The notes under the pieces are model-generated. The model ran no database searches and was not told the DNA's origin. It saw only the letters and a program-made list of their open reading frames with translations. From contig JAKMXF010000321.1 of NCBI GenBank assembly GCA_024704765.1, positions 248,001-312,000 on the forward strand: a DNA stretch of 64,000 nt, given 5' to 3'. This stretch comes from Oopsacas minuta. Its lineage: Eukaryota; Animalia; Porifera. Numbering within the stretch: the stretch's first letter is position 1; each line of letters starts with the position of its first letter. A program made the position numbers and the translations under genes. Below are positions 6,542 to 39,159 of the stretch, in pieces.

Positions 6542-6960
6542 TTACAGTCTGTGCTGACGTCATTTTACCAAAATACTCTCAGTGGATTATTGAAAGTATA
6601 TTATTCTATTAAATATTTATTTTAGTAAAGAAAGATAAAATTGAATTTTACTAATCTTGTTAGACATGTAAAAATGTAAAAATGGAATTCTACGTCCCTG
6701 TTTACTCCTATTTAACAAGTGGAAGCTAATCTCTAGGATAATTTTGAAATGTTAACTAAAAGGTGTCAAAATATGATTAATCATATGATAAATCAGTGTA
6801 TATATATTTAATATAATGTATTGACCAATAGAATTACAGTCTACATCAATACAAATACATTACAGTGCTAATTACATTACTAACACTCCACCAGAACTAA
6901 TTTTATGCATTAATGGCTAATTGTAAGACCCTACAATCTGATTGGGCTAAAAACAGAAGT
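6542..6960 (+). repeat. Dispersed repeat family A, copy 2 (~420 bp)
   Basis: Near-identical to 9783-10194 over most of its length; contains TGACGTCA at 6555. Confidence 0.9.
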
Positions 6961-25727: not shown

Positions 25728-26348
25728 GTACTTAAATAGAACTCTGATGATTATTATAAAAATCAAACACAAAATTAGAACATTCAATTCGTGGGAAGAA
25801 CGTCTGATGAAGACTGTTTTTTATAAACTATATGATCCTATCCTCGTGTGATTATAACATTTTCAGATGATACCATCTAAAATCTGACACTTCGATTATC
25901 TCATCACTTTCTTTCTGGGCATAGAATATTGAATTTTCAACTAAACAAGTAGATAGTACAATCTGTGACCAAAGAATTATCCATAAATTTGGAAAAAACA
26001 CGTATAAAATCTCCCCGGACGGGCCGGAATGAGAAATAAGTAATAATTAATTCGCTCATAAGCTTTAGGAAAACGGAATTTAACAGTTGTATGATTTTAT
26101 GCAAGCTTGCAATATATCAATAGCCATAATTAAATTATCCTACCATCTGTCTTACATAAATACAATTCGATAATACAATTATGTTCGCACTCAGGTATAC
26201 TAAAACTAATGACTTCTTGCTAATAATAATAAGAAGCACTAACTATAATCTCCCAAATAGAATCCATAATATACACATAGGCTTGTTTACCATCAATTTG
26301 ATACCAACAAGAGCATATTTATACGATACACGAATTCTAATATGTAAA

Positions 26349-26828
26349 ATGGTTTTTAAGAGTGCTATTATTTGTCTAATTGTGGCAGGATTGTGCCATA
26401 TTGTGCCACTTCTCGCAGATGAGATATATACAAACTGTGCTAACGATAATAACCTGGGAATGGTTACAGAAGTACAGCTGGATGATTGCACAGAAACACC
26501 TTGTACATTGCATCGTAACTCAACTGTTGAAATTCTAGTTGGATTTATTCCATATTTTACCGTGGATTATTTGAGTTTGAATGTTTACGGATTAATAGAG
26601 ACTAAATACTACAAATACAAGTATTCTTTCATAAATAACGCCAATGCATGTGATGAATCTTACAATATCAAGTGTCCAATCGAGGAAAAAGAAAGACAGA
26701 TATTCAAAATGGAAGTAGAAATTAAGTCATACTATCCTCAGTGGGAATTATCTGTGATAGCTGCTCTATCTGATGAGAACAGTGGTTATAATATTGTTTG
26801 TATCGGTATTGATGTGAATATTGAGTAA
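26349..26828 (+). CDS. ML-domain (NPC2/MD-2-related lipid recognition) secreted protein 1, 159 aa
   Basis: Signal peptide, six Cys in NPC2-like spacing (DCTETPCTLHR, ACDESYNIKCPI, IVCI) and the YP motif. Intronless. Confidence 0.85.
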   Translation: MVFKSAIICLIVAGLCHIVPLLADEIYTNCANDNNLGMVTEVQLDDCTETPCTLHRNSTVEILVGFIPYFTVDYLSLNVYGLIETKYYKYKYSFINNANACDESYNIKCPIEEKERQIFKMEVEIKSYYPQWELSVIAALSDENSGYNIVCIGIDVNIE

Positions 26829-27686: not shown

Positions 27687-30600
27687 ATGTTATCAATAGC
27701 TATATACATATTATGTATTGGGATATTAGTACAGAGAGGATGCTCTGAAGTTCCTATTTGTGATACGGGAACTTATATCATAGTAATGAGAGATGAGTAT
27801 GATACGGACCAGGAGATGGAGTATGTCGTGAATGCGATGGAGATTATGTCACCAGATGCAGAGCCCATGCGTGTGACTAGAAATCTCATTCCTACAATCA
27901 TTGGAGAGATGAGTATTGATGCTGCTACAATGGTATGTATTATTATTAGATATTCTTAGTGCCTCCAAATTGGCATCACGATGTGTGACGTCCGTACGTC
28001 CATCGCGGTGCCGAGAATTCTAGGTGATGAAAATTGGTACTGGGTACATTTTGGGAATGATTGCACGAAAGAATTCTTGTAATGTGAATATTTTCACACC
28101 TTTTTGGCCAATCAGATTTTGACATAACATATTACACACATTGGTTCTAACCTCACAAATCTTTGAGAAAAGTGTGAATTGTGTATTTCCAAGATTTATA
28201 TCAATGAAAATACACACAAATTTACTTTTTTCTTCTTCCTTGATTCTTCAAATTATTTCCTGGTTTTCTCGTAAAATCACTGTTGGATAAATGTTCTTGC
28301 AATGTATAAGTTATTGGATTGTTGTAGGCAAGCAACATGCGATCAGTAGCATACATAGAGTGTGACCAGATCGTGACCAGAACAGACGCTGAAGTAGACA
28401 GAGACAATGATGGGAGGGTTATCATCACCCCTCAAGCCCTTAACGGATTCGTATTCGCAGATCTCGCCCTCACCGAGTTCACAAACGCACCCCCGGTCAA
28501 AAACATATCAGGAGCGGGGAGCTTGGATGACACAGACCGATACAACCTGGACGCAATAGATGAGGACTGCTACGAGTGTAATGATGGTACTTACAAGCCT
28601 AAATACACAGGGAAAGGAGTAGACGTATACATACTCGATACGGGAATAAGATACGATCATAACGATTTTCTAGACCCCTCGCTATCTGAAACACGAGCTG
28701 GGTATGGAGGTTATGACGCTGTTGATGAGTTTCAAAGACAGAACCAGAGGGGAGTGGATTGCAATGGACATGGTACACATTGTGCGGGTATAGCGACTGG
28801 ACGAGTGAGTGGGGTGGCTAAAGAAGCGAAAGTGTATAGTGTTAGAGTTTTGAATTGCGATAGTTTTGGGGGATTCAATGGGATAATACATGCTTTGGAA
28901 TTTGTGTTAGAAAGACATAGAGAAAACCTTCAAAAGTAAGTTACAGTACAATATAGAATGTAATTTATCGATAGATTGTGGTGTCTACATCAGATAAATA
29001 TTAGGGAAATACATGTGTAACTTAAAATTAACAATTTCAAGGCAAAAGACACTAAATCGGACTGCTAGATTTCGCATGGACGGACGGACGTTCACATCGT
29101 CCATGCCATTACTCATTAGGGTATCTCCCTACAACAAACAAATAGTCGGCACAGTAAAAATATTCATAACAATTTATAAGAAATACAGCAGTTGTATGTA
29201 TATTTAACCAATTAAATTCCACTCTACAGACCTGTTGGTGAATACAAAGGTTCCGTGGTTAGTATGTCACTAGCTGGCCCTGTGGTCCGGTCTGCTAACG
29301 AGGCAGTGTGTCGGTTAGTGGCAGCAGGTGTCGTAGTGGTTACAGCTAGTGGGAACTTTCGTCGCGACGCATGTAACTACAGTCCTGGATCAGCTGGTTG
29401 TCACATTAACGTAGGAGCTCATTACTACACTGAGAGAGATACAGATACTTGTATTAAAGATGTTTATTGGTTCACTTCCAGGACAACTTCTCCCGGATTC
29501 AATTATGGCAGATGTGTCCATATTATGGCGCCAGGACAGTATGTCGTTAGTAGTAGCTATCTAGACAGACAAAGTGAGTTGGAATTTAAATTGTATCAGC
29601 GAATCGCGGAGACAGCTAATTCGGTTCATAGATTGCATAATAGTGTTCCACAACCGTTGTTGCTCTCTCAAAGATCCACAATACTTTCTGTGTAATATTT
29701 GAAAGAATTCGCATCTTTGGATATAAATTTGTTCGAAATTCTATTAATGAAAGCTCCAAATATGCTGAATACCGCGTGTGGACACAATCAATAGTTTTAT
29801 GGTTCGAATTTTGAGACATTTGAGAATATAAAATTGGTAATATCGCCAGATACTATCTGCCCAATTCAATAGAAATTAAAGTTCAGTATGATGGGGGGGG
29901 TAATCTCCACAAACACGGTAGTATTTACGCCGAAAAATGCTGCCACGTTCCCCGTTTCCAAGGCACCGTATGTGTAACTGAATATAAATGATTTTTGTGT
30001 TTAGGAACGATATCGATGAGTGGAACATCTATGGCATGCCCCCACGTGGCTGGTGCTTGTGCCCTTTTGTTGGATCAATTCCCGAGAGCTACCCCAGACG
30101 AGATCAGATCTCTACTGATAGACAAGAGTTGCTCAGACATCGACGAGAGAAGAATGCATCCCAGCCTGAGAAGACTTACTCCAAACCGAAGACTCAGGAT
30201 TCGAAGACGTTAGTTTTTAATATTAAGTTATAAATTAAGAAATACTGCCACTGGCTCGTCAACTGTCCCGATTTTATTGACATATGTTGAGGCTAATATC
30301 CCACCGAGACCGAAAAAAAACTTAAAATTACAATCTGTGCTGACAAGGAAATGTTTGTTGTCTATCAATACACTTAGTGCCTCCAATTTATAGTGTCACT
30401 TCAAAAATGTATGCACTAAGCTGTCGGCACAGATTGTAACTTTTCGGAGGATATATGATCCCGTTGTAGCATATCTATCGGTAACCATAGCAACGAGAGG
30501 TATAATGAAATATTTCGTCATAGGTTCACCAGATGAACCTGGTCCAGGGACAGATCCTCCCACAACTCCAGCACCTACAACACCCACACAAACAACAACA

Positions 30601-31524
30601 ACAACATTATCACCATCCACGGTACCACCTGTCTGCACAGCTAGATGCATGTTCAGTACTCTAAGTAATCCCACAATTGGAGCAAGATTTGTAAGAATTC
30701 GATCATTCAACACACACCTTGGATTTTTATTGACTTCATCTTTCCGAAGCAGAAATTATGTACCTAAAAAGGTTTCCACGGCGACAGATAAAAACGGGGA
30801 AAATCCTATCTGGACGATTATCGAAGATCAAGTAGACTCAATCTTCGACTATCGAATACATTTAGGTCCGAGTTTTGGCTCTATAGGAATCCCTTTTGAA
30901 CAAATTGAGGATGTGGCTCGTAGTTACGGAGAGGAATTCGCGATTAACACAATTATCCCTTTCAGAGATGATAAAGTATTCCTAGTGCTGCATAAACGTA
31001 GTGATTGCAATGACAACACATTCATACAGGTAGACTACACACTTAGATCAGGACCGAGTGAACTTGTTGATCCCATTACATACAACAACCTGCTTGGGGA
31101 TATGGCAACCTTTGATGTATCGTTTACACCTGGGATTCCTCGAGTATACGTGCATAACACTCCTAAACGAACTCATGGTGCCAACTGCGACTGCCAAACA
31201 ACAATAAATTTATCAAATCAACTTCTACTCAATTTAAGAAACACTCGTATAGAAAGGAATCTCATAATTGTTGATGTAAACAGCTATTATATCAGTGGTA
31301 ACTTACTGTTTACAGTAACCCTGTGTAATACGGATTGTTTTACAGGCAGAGGCTGTATTAATAGTGTAGATGATAATGTGCTGGTTGATGATATGGATGA
31401 GGATAATTATCAGATAAGAATAGCAGGAATGAAGGCAGCACGGTATGAGATAATTGATCTAGCTCCGTACTACAATGAAGATAATAGATTGAACTTTGTT
31501 GGTGTATTTATCCGTGTCAGTTAA
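27687..31524 (+). CDS. Secreted subtilisin-family (S8A, proteinase K-like) protease 1 with I9-like prodomain, Pro/Thr linker and ~300-aa C-terminal domain; 5 exons, ~800 aa
   Basis: Exons 27687-27932, 28328-28935, 29230-29573, 30005-30208, 30524-31524 join in frame (phases 0,2,1,1). Catalytic motifs ILDTGI, HGTHCAG and GTSMACPHVAG; oxyanion ASGN. Confidence 0.9.
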
Positions 31525-33269
31525 TGGCTATTATCATTGGTGTGATTTAATGTAATTATATGTATAGACCCCTTTTGGGGAGGTTCACTATGGTAGATAG
31601 GAACATACTTGATAAGGATTCCCCTAACATTCTGTCGTGGTGCTTTGGGTAACATATACGCCGTGTTTGGAAGGTGTAAAATATGTCCACCAAAATGTGA
31701 TACACAAACACTCTGAATTTGTATAGGACATAATTATTTACACTATATTTATCTTCTGTTACAAGATAGAGCTGTAGTTTGTCTACAGTCTAGACCCCAA
31801 TAGAGATTACATCTTCGCTACTACTAGGGCACAGTCCAGAGGATTAATCGTATTAGCATTTCAATCATCAAGGAATTGACATAATAGTTATTACACAAAT
31901 TATATGGAGCATTCCATTGTCAATTAATAATGTTCAATAAAGTACGTACACAAACGAAGTAGTAAAGTATTGTGAAATGACTCTAGCATTATTATAGAAT
32001 ATCTTGGCTATGTTTAGAATTATTTGTAAATAGCTATTTATCTAATAATCGATGTTATTTAGACTTTTAATACTTAAATGAGTTGCGTAATACGTTACAT
32101 TATGAAATACAAATTTGGCCATAGACTAAGCCTTTGTAAACGCTAGATTATAGGCGCAAAACTGGGTGGACTAGGCCACTAGGGTCGTTGGGGTCGAGTG
32201 GGTCCACTCGATTCTAACAACAAAATACAATTTCATAATTTTAATACAAATGTGGCATGCATGATATTATCAATAATTAATCTTGGGTGGATATAAAGTG
32301 TTTGGAAGCTGCACAGGCCACAGGTACAGGGCAAACCATATCGTGCTTGTAAAATATTGAAGCATTATAATTATAGTAGAACTCAGATAAAGCATACCCC
32401 TCGGGAAACATACTTTAGTAAGTACTATCGGAGTTTACGTCTTATCCGAATTCTACTGTATTCCAATCAGAATAGCTTGCAGTACATCTGCTTTTACAAG
32501 ATAATTATAGTGAAAGATTCAATATTCATGTTACAGATATCTTGAACAAATCTTACTGTATTTCCCTGAATATTAGTGTATCAAATAACAAATTTATCTA
32601 AGAATAATGAGCTAATGACTTTGCTATATCATAATTAAGTTTAATTGAAACAGATTATTAGGTTCAATTGCTAGAATTAGAAATTCTCAACCCACAGATC
32701 TAATGAGAAACTTTGCCCCAGGTATATGAAAATAAAATCTAAGCTCTTGAACACGCCTCGAGGGTGAAATAATTGTTTTGGAACCTAATTTTAAATCACA
32801 AGGGTGTCTTGATGCACATCATGGTCCCAGAACTATTTTTCTTGGTTACGGCCTCCGGCTAAGGTATGTGATATAAGAAATACACTCAATCATAACAATG
32901 AGGTAATCAATTCGATCATTAAAATATCATATAATTCGGCCACATTGCGTTTCTATATTTCAAAAGTTTGCGAATATTATTCTGCAATGATTACAGCAAA
33001 TATCACTAATATAACCACCCATATATGGTAAAGGGAAATGAAAATGTTAAGTAAGTCTATATCATTAAAATTAGAGCATTTATTCAACAGACTGACTATC
33101 AAGCAATTTAGCTGAGATACCTTAATTAGAAATGAAGTTAATATATTCGAAGTGATTGAAGGAAATGAATATTTGATGTAGGCAATATGTATTTAGTGTA
33201 TTGTATTGTATTGTATGGGAGGCTATTAAGTATAAATATATTAATGTTAATTGGAAAAAGAAAACTTGA

Positions 33270-36200
33270 ATGAAGGCAATAAATATGTTGAATTGGCTAG
33301 CAGTAGCTATTCTTTTGCAAATAGCGTCCGCGCAATATAACGATTATATTATCGTTTTCAAGGATATCACATCTCAATCCGATATGAACGATGCGATGGA
33401 GGCCATGTACCAGATGAGCTGTCCTCTAGACAGTAGTGGGAATGTAATATCCTGTGATAATAATTTAAAGCAGACCTATGATTTGATGAAAACAGTATCA
33501 GGTCCTATGAGCCAAGAAGCTGTCGATATGGTAAGTTAGATTAGTTGTAATTGTGTCATATCAGTCCAGGGAAATTAGAAAATGTGTCCAACCGACGAAC
33601 TGGTAGTGTAGCTCGGGTCCTGCGAGCTATGACAAAACGTCAAAAATTAATAAATATAAGATAAATATTAATAACTGATATTTGCAAATGTCAGAATCGA
33701 ATTCTACGTACATGATTACCCTGAAGTAATTGTTCAAACGAATCTTAAAGGTGTGAAAATATGATTAAATATATGATAAGTATAAATAATTCATAATTAA
33801 ATGGCAAAATCGAATTCAATACACAAAATTGCAAACCAAATAAAAGCAATAAACTGCTTGTAAAATATTATATCAGCAAAAGTTTTTAACTCAAAATTTT
33901 TTAACATAACCTATTACTGTAGGCAAGCAGCCTGTCTAACGTAGAATACGTAGAAATGGATCAATTAGTGACCAGAGCGGATGCAGTAGTCGATCTAATA
34001 AGTCCCACACAACACACAGAGGCAGACGATATACCTGAATGTCTGTTAAACGAATGTGACGGAAAACAGACACTCATCCACGATGTGTACGGGATAACAG
34101 CATTCTCAGCAGCATCAACAGAGGCTGGAGCAACTGATAGATACAATTTGGATATGATAGACCAAGGCTGCTACGAGTGTAACAATGGTAGATACGAACC
34201 GGAAGCTACAGGAGAAGGTGTTGATATATACATATTGGATACTGGTATACGTTTTGACCATAGTGAGTTTGGTAACAGAGCCAGTTACGGAGGATACGAT
34301 GCAGTGGATGATTTCCAGAACCAGAACCAACAGGGTGTTGATTGTCACGGACATGGGACACATTGTGCGGGCATCGCAGCTGGCATAACAAGTGGGGTAG
34401 CAAAGGAAGCGAATATTTACAGTGTTAGAGTTTTGGATTGTAATAGTTTTGGAGGATTCAGCGGGATTATTCGGGCACTAGATCATGTGCTACAGAGACA
34501 CAGGGATAGACTGAGCCTGTAAGTTTATTTGTTAATGTACGACTCCTGTTATATCGAACAGGAATACAGTAAACATTGGATTTAACGACACTCGTTTGGG
34601 CAGGCTGAAAGGGTCGTTTCATCCGATTTGTCGTTAAACCCGAAGAAGCTTTTAAATATGCACTATACGCCCGATGACACCCAAATATATTCACATAAAA
34701 TTTTAGCATTACATTCTACGCACAAACGCTTTAAATATGCATTTTCGTAACAATGCAGGTACTGTTGAATCAAAACAGGGGAGAGTCTATTTGGTTTATA
34801 AGTAAATCAGTCATTTAAACCTTAATAATTCACAAATTAGTACACTTTTCTGAGTCCACACTACAGACAGCCCAAAAGTCGTAATATCCGATGGGATTTA
34901 CATGGAGCAGGCAAAATAAACCGGTTTATCCATAAGTACAAAATTTTATTTTTATTCTAAATATAGCTCAACAGATGACTATAAAGGTTCCGTGGTTAGT
35001 ATGTCACTAGCTGGTCCAGTGGTGCAAGCAGCCAACGAGGCAGTGTGTCGGTTAGTGGCAGCAGGTGTCGTAGTGGTTACAGCTAGTGGGAACTTTCGTC
35101 GCGACGCATGTAACTATAGTCCTGGATCAGCTGGTTGTCACATTAACGTAGGAGCTCATTACTACACTGAGAGAGATACAGATACTTGTATTAAAGATGT
35201 TTATTGGTTCACTTCCAGGACAACTTCTCCCGGATCAAATTATGGCAGATGTGTACATATTATGGCGCCAGGACAATATGTGCTCAGTGCTAGCTATCTG
35301 GATAGCAACCGTAAGTTGCATAGGAATGCAAATATCGAAATTTCCTATAGTATTATTCACACCTTTTTAGCGTTACCACATTTTAACATGTGTGCCATTT
35401 ATGGTTGTATTTATAGGCCACGTAACTATGAGTGGAACTTCCATGGCATGCCCCCATGTGGCAGGAGCAGCTGCTCTCATCCTAGACAGATACCCACGTT
35501 TGTCACCCGATAGAGTCAGGAGAATGCTGGAGGGGGATGCCTGTCCTGATATAGACGAGAGGAGAATGCACCCCAGTCTGAGAGGTCTAAATCCAAACAG
35601 GAGACTACGAGTACTTCAAGGTTGTTGCAAATTTATATAATAAACACTGGTGTAACAAACAAACAAACAAACAAACAAACAATTCATTTATATTTTCCTT
35701 ATCAGGTGTCCCAGTTGAAGTCACAATTCCACCTACAGAGCCGGCCACACCAACTCAACCCCCAACAACACCTGTGCCACAAATATGCGACACAATCTGC
35801 CCATTCGACACAATGAAAAATGTCGAAATCGAAGATGTGGTTGTCGTCAATGAAGAAGTTACAAACATTCCATCACTCCATTTTCACATGTATTTTGCTT
35901 TACACAACAGAGTATTTTTTAACAACTATAGACATATTTTAAACAAAGTGTCAATTGCTTGGAACGAAAATTTTGATAAAGTTACTTACTCACTGATCTT
36001 CAGGAAGGTGACAAACACTGGGTATTACAAATATATATACGGAGTAGATAATACAGGAGTTCCATATCAAGATATCGACGAAGAAATCGCCGAATTAGAA
36101 GCACAATATCCAGGAAGAACATACTACGCACAGACAATCATACCTGTAGGCAACAACCGCGTGTTTATCCTAGCAACATATAAAGACGATTGTAATGATA

Positions 36201-36700
36201 ATGAATTCAGACAGGCCAACTATACCGGTTACCCCGAAGAAGTGTTAAATCCGTTTACAATCGACAATTTAGTTGGGCATAAAGCAACATTCGATATTTC
36301 TATAACACCATTCGAAGATCAAGTCTACGTACACGATACACATAATGGGTTCACTAGTAACTGTGAGTGCTATAGCTATTACAATATACCGACAGAGCAG
36401 CTAGCAGGAATATCTGAAACATTAGGAGGGGATAGACAACTCGTAGTGACAGCAATCGATTCTTACAAGCTAGGCACTAGGCTGTACTTCACGGTAACTC
36501 TGTGTATGCCTGAATGTTATACAGCTAGTGAGTGTGTTGATGAAGTGACAAATAACATGGTATTCAGTGGTTTGGATAAAGAAGGGCTTAGGAGGATACT
36601 TATAGGGGCTGGGGTGTTGGGAATGGAACCAATCGCTGTTGCTCCTTATTATATGGGGGATGAAGCATTTTATGCTTTGTCTCTTATAAGAGTTAATTAA
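33270..36700 (+). CDS. Secreted subtilisin-family (S8A) protease 2, tandem paralog; 5 exons, ~799 aa
   Basis: Exons 33270-33530, 33923-34518, 34967-35310, 35417-35620, 35706-36700, with the same phases and the same exon 3/4 lengths (344/204 bp) as protease 1. D/H/S triad intact. Confidence 0.9.
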
Positions 36701-37497: not shown

Positions 37498-39159
37498 CTA
37501 GTTAGGTGTGGCTCCCTCAGGTGTTAGTTTCAGTTTGACAGGGGACTCTTTGCTAGATGTGTTGGAGAGGGTATCACTATCTGTTGATTGGTCAGCTCCA
37601 TTTCCTATCTCATCGTTAGTTCCACTTTCATGAAAATCTTTAGTTCCAGTTGTGAGACAGATAGTTTCGGTATGACCGTCTTTAGTTCCAATTTGGTTAG
37701 AGTCATGCTCATCTTTAGATAAAGTACCATTTTCTAAAGATTCGATTTCTCCATTAGACACGATTTTATCGGCCTTGTCTTTGGGTGTTGAAATTGTGTC
37801 AGGGTTTTCTAATGAAGATATTTTCCTTTTCAATTGTGTTCTCTCTTCCTGGAGCGCGCGACACAATCCTTCAAGAGTTATATTCTTGTTCGTGAGTCTG
37901 TTAAGCTCCTTTTTATTCTCAGAAGTTCTTTCACGTTGCTCTCTCCTTGTCGATTCGACAGATTCCAATTTCTTGATAAGACGATCTCTGTCATTGTCTA
38001 GTCGTTTTATAATTTTATCTTTCTTGTCCAACTCTCTTTTCAACATTTCAAAAGCCTCTCCACTCTTACACATAGTTTCTTGGACCTCTTGGAATTTCGC
38101 TGAATAGAATTCTATCTCATTTCTCATCTCAACTTCTTTCATAATCGTTTCCTCGTATATTTTATGTTTCTCAGTAGCTTGTAGCATCATTATGTCTCTT
38201 TCCGCGTTTGTAGTCTCTTTTTGCTGCTGTAGGAGAATATCGAATTGCGCGGCCCTCGCTTCCGATAATTTTATTTCAATTTCCTTCTTCTCAAAAAGCC
38301 TCCGAATATTTTCCTCTCTTGCGTCGAACTGTTCGATTATTGATCTCATATCCCCGTTGTCTCTCTCTAATTTAAGGTTACGCTGGTTCTGCTCTTGCAT
38401 CTGAGATGTAATCTCGTCTATTTGGCTCTGAAACTGTGCAGCGACCTAAAAGATATTCATTGAGACATATCACTCTCCTTCTGTGAAATTTTCATATGCA
38501 TATAACTCTATATGAAATTAAGATTAATCATAAGGATAATCCATGGTTAATTTTAGGGAAAATTTATATATTAAAGTAGCATCGACCCTCTACCAATTTA
38601 CACATTCTGTGGACCACATGTTGTCGCTATGGCCACAAATGGATCCAATCCTGGCCCATGGACCCTATGTTGGGAACTGAAAAATTAGAGAGATGTTTGT
38701 TTGTCTGTTAGTTAGATATTTAGTCGGTTTGCTTGATTGTGTATTTGTTTGTTAGTTTGTTTGTTTGCTTGTCTGTTAGAAAGTTTGTTTGTCTGTGTAT
38801 TTATATAAACACACCTCTTTCCTAGCTAATTTCTCCTCAGTAACCTTCAGCCTAGTATCTTCAGAAACAGCTTTAGAATGTTTCTGTAATTCCCTACACA
38901 AACTCTCTAGCGTACTCTTAGCTACTACAGCCTTGGTCAGCTGTCCTTGTATGCTATCCCGCTGAGTTGTAAGGTCGACACATCGCTTCTCCGAATCAGA
39001 AATTTGCTTCTCAAACTTTCTATTTGTTGCCAAAGCTGAATGGAATTCTTTCTGTAGAGTGGCCAGCTTTTGGTCAGAAGGGAGATCTCCTGCTAGTACT
39101 TGAGCTAGTTCTGAGTATTGAGGAGGCATAGAAGAAGGTTTGAACTTGCGTGATGCCAT
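37498..39159 (-). CDS. Taxilin family coiled-coil protein, 2 exons, ~430 aa
   Basis: Exons 39159-38815 and 38445-37498. Motifs KSTLESLCRELQK, EQFDAREE, FQETMCKSGEAF and LEGLCRALQEER. Confidence 0.9.

Follow-up and report, generated by a model that had tools for sequence, protein, structure and literature searches.

Two tandem protease genes and their transcripts

The DNA analysed here (the window) is a stretch of 64,000 nucleotides from the sponge Oopsacas minuta (GenBank assembly GCA_024704765.1, contig JAKMXF010000321.1, positions 248,001 to 312,000 of the forward strand), and all positions given below are those of the window. At 27687-31524 and 33270-36700, both on the + strand, it holds two tandem paralogous five-exon genes, gene 1 and gene 2. 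The gene models were assembled by hand from a list of open reading frames (ORFs) and the sequence. All eight introns are of the GT..AG type, and their phases follow the same order, 0,2,1,1, in the two genes. After splicing, the frames are uninterrupted and end at the stops of the ORFs, to give proteins of 800 residues for gene 1 and 799 residues for gene 2. Each protein has, in order, a signal-like N-terminus, a probable propeptide, a proteinase K-type protease domain of the subtilisin family (S8), a Pro/Thr linker, and a C-terminal domain (C-domain) of about 270–300 residues (Table 1). An earlier note on this DNA had proposed that the ORFs 30505..31524 and 35774..36700 look free-standing and are in fact spliced to the two proteases. 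Both ORFs are present, and the start that the note gave, 30524, is the exact acceptor of gene 1 exon 5; the last exon of gene 2 begins at 35706. The local annotation is corrected in this way, the two seemingly free-standing ORFs being the last exons of protease genes.

The Pfam profile PF00082 scores above its 21.8-bit cut-off on the exon 2 ORFs of both genes and on exon 3 of gene 2, and under it on exon 3 of gene 1 (scores in Table 1). Each spliced protein has the motifs DTG, HGTH, NYSPG, and GTSMA, with residue numbers of about 186/193, 230/231, 334/335, and 406/407. By these motifs, the Asp-His-Ser triad, in subtilase order, and the oxyanion Asn are intact in both proteins. The closest solved structure to the gene 2 exon 2 ORF is aqualysin-1 (4.7e-30), followed by keratinase, Vibrio-type proteases, 2b6n, deposited as proteinase K (3.3e-22), and PCSK9 (7e-17), with subtilisin BPN' far behind at about 1e-7. 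We assign the protease to S8A, proteinase K subfamily, from the PF00082 matches above the cut-off, the triad motifs, and the closest solved relatives. Aqualysin-1, the Vibrio proteases, and PCSK9 share with the sponge proteins the catalytic domain, the triad motifs, and the layout of a prepro region, S8 domain, and C-terminal noncatalytic part. No beta-lactamase domain (PF00144) was found by Pfam on any of the exons, and the catalytic domain is S8, so by enzyme family the proteins are not polyglycine hydrolases (PGHs).

The N-terminus of each protein is hydrophobic and signal-like, and a secretion signal is predicted from the sequence. The probable propeptide was spotted by eye from the pattern YI[IV]V...VxY[IV]ExD. 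At the end of the S8 domain, just before the linker, a basic sequence, NRRLR[IV], is conserved (30180-30208 + 30524-30530 in gene 1; 35590-35620 in gene 2). In gene 1, this motif is extended over the splice to RRLRIRRR-S.

Four public runs from one sample contain the locus. None is labelled as RNA, and the run X4 was used for its exon-like depth. Three of the four cover the exons, introns, and spacer evenly, as expected of DNA. The depth of X4 is in the thousands over the exons, in the hundreds in most introns, in the thousands in gene 2 intron 2, and about 7–15 between the genes; the exon depth is 100 to 1000 times the intergenic depth. X4, a run whose type is not on record, behaves as RNA, and it alone among the four carries GT..AG joints. 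The joint 30208->30524 (two contigs, GT..AG) is the gene 1 exon 4–5 junction, exactly as predicted, and the joint 34518->34967 is the exon 2–3 junction of gene 2. Loose ends in X4 at 30005, 33922, and 35311 carry, respectively, the end of gene 1 exon 3, the end of gene 2 exon 1, and the start of gene 2 exon 4. Both genes are transcribed, since X4 shows exon depth and joints at each. In-frame splicing of the two ORFs to the S8 exons through a Pro/Thr linker, as the earlier note had it, is thus observed directly for gene 1. For gene 2, the exon 4–5 junction is deduced from a frame that stays open across it, from its phase, which is conserved, and from L001, L002, and L004, which carry related genes with the same layout.

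An (ACAA)n microsatellite at 35648-35695 sits inside the 85-nt intron 4 of gene 2. In addition, one contig each of the DNA runs X1 and X3 joins 30612 to 33747, skipping 3134 nt. These contigs have only 22 letters on the short side, and loose ends begin in the (CAA)n-rich linker at 30591. A simple repeat has probably produced this join as an artefact of the assembly graph, with a structural variant as the alternative.

Table 1. Exons of the two protease genes and units of their C-domains, in window positions
Feature	Position	Strand	Content and evidence
Gene 1 exon 1	27687..27932	+	Start codon, hydrophobic signal-like N-terminus, most of probable propeptide; ORF, GTATGT donor at 27933
Gene 1 exon 2	28328..28935	+	Propeptide end, S8 first part, catalytic Asp (DTG), His (HGTH); PF00082 53.9 bits
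Gene 1 exon 3	29230..29573	+	S8 middle, oxyanion Asn (NYSPG); core is the putative gene-conversion tract; PF00082 18.2 bits
Gene 1 exon 4	30005..30208	+	Catalytic Ser (GTSMACPH), S8 end, closes with basic RRLRIRR
Gene 1 exon 5, linker part	30524..30621	+	Pro/Thr-rich; in-frame splice to exon 4 seen
Gene 1 exon 5, C-domain and stop	30622..31524	+	Five predicted beta-alpha-beta-beta units; AlphaFold2 model, 7TPU match
Gene 1 C-domain units (approximate)	30676-30834, 30850-30996, 31018-31164, 31192-31329, 31366-31518	+	AlphaFold2 model
Gene 2 exon 1	33270..33530	+	Start codon, signal-like N-terminus, most of probable propeptide
Gene 2 exon 2	33923..34518	+	Propeptide end, S8 first part (Asp, His); PF00082 50.6 bits
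Gene 2 exon 3	34967..35310	+	S8 middle, oxyanion Asn; putative conversion tract; PF00082 24.7 bits
Gene 2 exon 4	35417..35620	+	Catalytic Ser, S8 end
Gene 2 exon 5, linker part	35706..35773	+	Pro/Thr-rich; continues the frame of S8 exon 4
Gene 2 exon 5, C-domain and stop	35774..36700	+	Five predicted units; AlphaFold2 model, 7TPU match
Gene 2 C-domain units (approximate)	35837-36007, 36026-36178, 36203-36343, 36368-36505, 36545-36694	+	AlphaFold2 model

Predicted fold of the C-terminal domain

The C-domains were modelled with AlphaFold2 without templates, from alignments of 9 sequences for gene 2 and 15 for gene 1. The gene 2 model has a predicted local distance difference test score (pLDDT) of 74 and a predicted template modelling score (pTM) of 0.73, and the gene 1 model has a pLDDT of 84.6 and a pTM of 0.85. 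Assignment of secondary structure with DSSP gives five strand-helix-strand-strand (EHEE) units in both models, with unit 3 of the gene 2 model poorly resolved and without its helix. The periodicity of about 50 residues that had been read from the sequence is thus real in the predicted structures. When all five units were compared with each other by hhalign, the similarity was significant for units 4 and 5 alone (E 4e-4), and what the earlier note had taken as the three clearest units correspond to these two. The family has eight invariant Cys residues, and they are located at the boundaries of units 2/3, 3/4, and 4/5 and also ahead of unit 1.

What known structure do these models resemble? In Foldseek searches of the PDB, both models gave 7tpu_A as the first match, with E 2e-3 for gene 2 and E 1.3e-4 for gene 1, and a probability of 1.00 in each case. 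Structure 7TPU is that of a fungal PGH, Fvan-cmp, and the match is to its N-domain. VIA-align superposed the models on 7TPU (about residues 13-264) over 240 residues with Z 14.4 and a root mean square deviation (rmsd) of 5.0 for gene 2, and over 241 residues with Z 18.3 and rmsd 3.9 for gene 1. The runner-up matches had Z 5.6 (gene 2) and 5.7 (gene 1), each to a single unit. The AlphaFold2 weights are older than the 2023 release of 7TPU, so the agreement of the models with this structure is not a memory of it. A structure search of the ESM Atlas gave a similar result: all 10 rows for the gene 2 model (template modelling score, TM, 0.51-0.62) and 9 of 10 for the gene 1 model (TM 0.56-0.70) carry PF17660 and/or PF24289. 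In the annotated rows, the barrel is joined to a beta-lactamase, M23, C1, astacin, C70, or kinase domain, and one row is a mollusc cluster of beta-lactamase and bacterial tandem repeat domain 1 (BTRD1, PF17660). A likeness to the Cys/His-rich C-domain of PCSK9 was considered and rejected as weak, with Z no higher than 4.7, TM about 0.2, and a probability of at most 0.28.

The earlier note had identified the C-domain as BTRD1 itself. The five-repeat fold of the PGH N-domain is upheld by AlphaFold2 and Foldseek, with 7TPU as the only strong match in the PDB, but strict Pfam membership is not. PF17660 matches gene 1 with 15.1-15.6 bits, on unit 5 only, where the gathering score is 23 bits. The unit that the earlier note thought best gives the only weak Pfam hit, to BTRD1 and below the threshold. 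Among the 15 family members, three match PF17660 (best E 0.0056), and BTRD1 is the only weak Pfam hit that recurs. Pfam gave no PF17660 match for the C-domain of gene 2, and embedding searches of the ESM Atlas gave no usable match for either C-domain. On the basis of the models, we therefore file the C-domain under the PGH N-domain fold or superfamily and not under PF17660 as now defined. A family with this predicted fold that is missed by profile methods means that the Pfam coverage of the fold is incomplete.

The N-domain of PGH consists of five EHEE repeats of 44 residues that form a barrel-like structure, with little conservation between the repeats and no known function (PMC9912923). Pfam names PF17660 "Polyglycine hydrolase-like, structural repeat". 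In the sponge models, too, five quasi-identical EHEE repeats form a barrel, with hardly any sequence similarity from one repeat to the next, and the barrel is attached to a secreted serine hydrolase. However, the sponge barrel is C-terminal, after a Pro/Thr linker, whereas the PGH barrel is N-terminal, and the partner is an S8 subtilase instead of a protease of beta-lactamase fold. The sponge domain also differs from 7TPU and PF17660 in its eight conserved Cys and its sequence score under the Pfam threshold. The bacterial and eukaryotic fusions of BTRD1 or DUF7477 with M23, papain C1, astacin M12A, C70/C39, and class A/C beta-lactamase folds, and with plant kinases, have the same modular design. 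In these fusions, as in the sponge genes, one five-unit barrel is combined with one catalytic domain, mostly that of a secreted peptidase. Neither Atlas search had an S8 partner among its 60 nearest models, and in sequence the sponge family makes up a separate cluster of 13 ORFs. PCSK9 is an animal example of an S8 protease with a Cys-rich C-domain, the fold of which differs from the sponge barrel.

The earlier note had called the architecture unrecognised. This is too strong, since a 2026 preprint reports the fold both by itself and in fusions, "frequently to proteases or kinases". The literature on BTRD1, PF17660, and sponge subtilisins gave no description of the present fusion, though no search aimed at S8+BTRD1 architectures was made. 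As far as searched, the fusion is new in having an S8 partner, in its sponge host, and in placing the barrel at the C-terminus. The barrel fold is found in all domains of life, often on proteases or kinases. To the five-repeat barrel, this locus adds an S8 partner, a C-terminal position, and an early-branching animal host.

Related genes and comparison of the paralogs

The family consists of 13 ORFs, the two copies in the window and 11 database ORFs from two protein searches, and comes from several related assemblies, on contigs of up to 839 kb. Both paralog types are on one contig in three assemblies. In L001, the full arrangement is repeated, with two S8 genes, each with a C-domain, and then a taxilin gene. 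L002 and the more distant L004 have S8 exon 4, a short intron, a Thr/Pro linker, and then the C-domain. Comparison of the C-domains with their orthologues gave proportions of nonsynonymous differences (pN) of 0.14-0.29 and of synonymous differences (pS) of 0.64-0.86. For the C-domain of gene 2 the values are pN 0.27-0.29 and pS 0.71-0.81. The ratio of nonsynonymous to synonymous substitution rates (dN/dS) is about 0.11-0.16 where dS is estimable. These values indicate that the C-domain is under purifying selection.

No relative outside the clade was found in protein collections of 1.8 billion (1.84 billion representatives) and 5.8 billion. Scans with the alignment A3 of 185,579 prokaryotic (bacterial and archaeal) species genomes and of the Joint Genome Institute (JGI) metagenomes gave pattern matches and no relative. 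The sole match to a sequence outside the family among the representatives was P0008, a bacterial protein of 1168 residues (E 2e-6). This match is the sum of seven short matches to a tandem repeat, each of about 44 profile positions, and it was judged to be a repeat-summed false positive.

The two paralogs differ greatly in how similar their parts are. The C-domains of gene 1 and gene 2 are 31% identical (E 5e-44). By contrast, the cores of exon 3, 29295-29539 and 35032-35276 (about 245 nt), are 97.6% identical in nucleotide sequence, compared with 54-67% for the remaining exons of the pair. The same is seen in the paralog pair of L001, where the cores 872-1114 and 6707-6949 are 97.5% identical. 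Between species, the exon 3 core is only 82-85% identical. The cores are thus nearly identical within a species and less so between species, and this pattern suggests that gene conversion has recurred and is limited to a single catalytic exon.

Function and origin of the C-terminal domain

What is the function of the C-domain in these proteins? We suggest that the locus holds two tandem transcribed genes for secreted prepro-subtilases that have a C-terminal barrel of the PGH N-domain type as a binding or scaffold module, and we regard this as likely. Each gene would encode a secreted prepro-subtilase of the proteinase K type (S8A), joined by a Pro/Thr linker, probably O-glycosylated, to a disulfide-rich C-domain with four predicted disulfides. 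The five beta-alpha-beta-beta repeats of the C-domain would close into a barrel, with the fold of the Pfam BTRD1/DUF7477 superfamily. By analogy with the fold on other peptidases, the barrel would be a noncatalytic binding or scaffold module that holds the protease on a partner, a substrate, or the extracellular matrix, or regulates it. For the PGH N-domain, the proposals are exosite binding with substrate positioning, and protein–protein interaction (PMC9912923), and the 2026 preprint suggests a role in scaffolding, regulation, or recruitment for the fold. With no more than 31% identity between their barrels, the enzymes of gene 1 and gene 2 may differ in their targets. The locus offers a natural comparison of two expressed paralogs with nearly the same protease domain and very different barrels.

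Several points weigh against this proposal. The C-domain models are predictions from shallow alignments (9 and 15 sequences). Sequence similarity to PF17660 is under the threshold, so the case for homology comes from the fold, at 9-14% identity, and searches of all PDB sequences with the alignments A2 and A3 found nothing at E up to 10, 7TPU included. No I9 propeptide was matched by Pfam on the exon 1 ORFs, where the propeptide is split by intron 1. At the transcript level, the kind of run that X4 is has not been recorded, and the gene 2 exon 4–5 joint (35620->35706) was not seen in it; this joint is hidden because the (ACAA)n repeat in that intron was masked in the read analysis, which also dropped one joint there. 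The fold has no experimentally assigned function anywhere, and a mutagenesis and docking study, as it is cited in the 2026 preprint, argues against direct substrate recognition by the PGH N-domain. Finally, the conserved NRRLR[IV] may be a dibasic processing site between protease and linker, at which the barrel would be removed.

This last point leads to the main rival of the binding or scaffold proposal, namely, that the C-domain is a C-terminal pro-region or sorting domain for folding, secretion, or latency, which is then removed and does not act in the mature enzyme. Bacterial enzymes of the proteinase K type, such as aqualysin-1 and the Vibrio-type proteases, carry removable C-terminal extensions, as pro-sequences or pre-peptidase C-terminal domains, and the sponge catalytic domain is closest to these secreted proteases. 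The basic motif before the linker, extended in gene 1 to RRLRIRRR-S, would be a possible site for such processing. However, the C-domain is large, has eight invariant Cys residues, and is under purifying selection. The barrels have diverged to 31% identity yet have kept their predicted fold, which suggests more than a disposable chaperone, and the same fold is present on many unrelated enzymes and also alone. Thus, we consider removal of the C-domain possible but unlikely.

A more specific form of the binding proposal is that the barrel is a target-recognition module that steers a protease of broad specificity to extracellular targets, such as bacterial prey, symbiont envelopes, or a component of the matrix or skeleton, with the two paralogs aimed at different ones. 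This is tentative, and we would not expect it to hold in this form. If it is true, the abundant sponge transcripts provide a tractable animal system for finding what the orphan fold binds.

It is also conceivable that the five-unit barrel is specific to sponges and arose by convergence, unrelated by descent to BTRD1 and the PGH N-domain. Outside the clade, neither sequence nor profile searches gave a significant match, the embedding searches had no usable match, and single units resemble common ACT-like or ferredoxin-like elements with Z about 5. On the other hand, the match to 7TPU extends over 240 residues with five units in register at Z 14-18, with a wide gap to the next structure. BTRD1 is the top weak Pfam hit, and it recurs in three members and on the correct unit. 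The context is also the same, a fusion to a secreted peptidase, and the known members likewise lack sequence conservation between repeats. We therefore find convergence improbable.

Still more doubtful is a bacterial origin by horizontal transfer, proposed for the module in the earlier note, or else for the gene as a whole, with bacterial or glycine-rich substrates as the targets. In its favour, the fold is carried mostly by bacteria, a single exon holds the module, and the S8 domain has higher scores with bacterial enzymes of the aqualysin type than with PCSK9. Against it, no bacterial relative of the C-domain was detected in any collection searched (1.8 + 5.8 billion proteins, 185,579 prokaryotic genomes, and the JGI metagenomes), exon 5 matches the neighbouring genes in GC and in GC content at third codon positions (0.31-0.35 compared with 0.31-0.38), exons of about 1 kb are common in the window, the genes are interrupted by four spliceosomal introns each and lie in conserved synteny, the fold is also found in fungi, molluscs (the mollusc cluster included), plants, and red algae, and subtilisin-like proteases are known in other sponge classes. 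Recent horizontal transfer is thus unsupported, and an ancient transfer is possible. On the simplest reading, the C-domain is an offshoot, rapidly evolving and particular to this lineage, of a fold that is old and widespread, and its fusion to the protease is older than the divergence of these sponges; we regard this as more likely than a recent import from bacteria.

The neighbours of the two genes could also be identified. The upstream neighbour, at 26181-26828 (+), encodes an ML-domain (MD-2/NPC2-like) protein (PF02221, E 1e-15). The downstream neighbour, at 37498-39159 (-), is a coiled-coil gene, and for its counterpart in L001 and L002 there is a match to Taxilin (PF09728). The ML gene of L001 is located beyond the taxilin gene, on its opposite side, which indicates a local rearrangement between the species.

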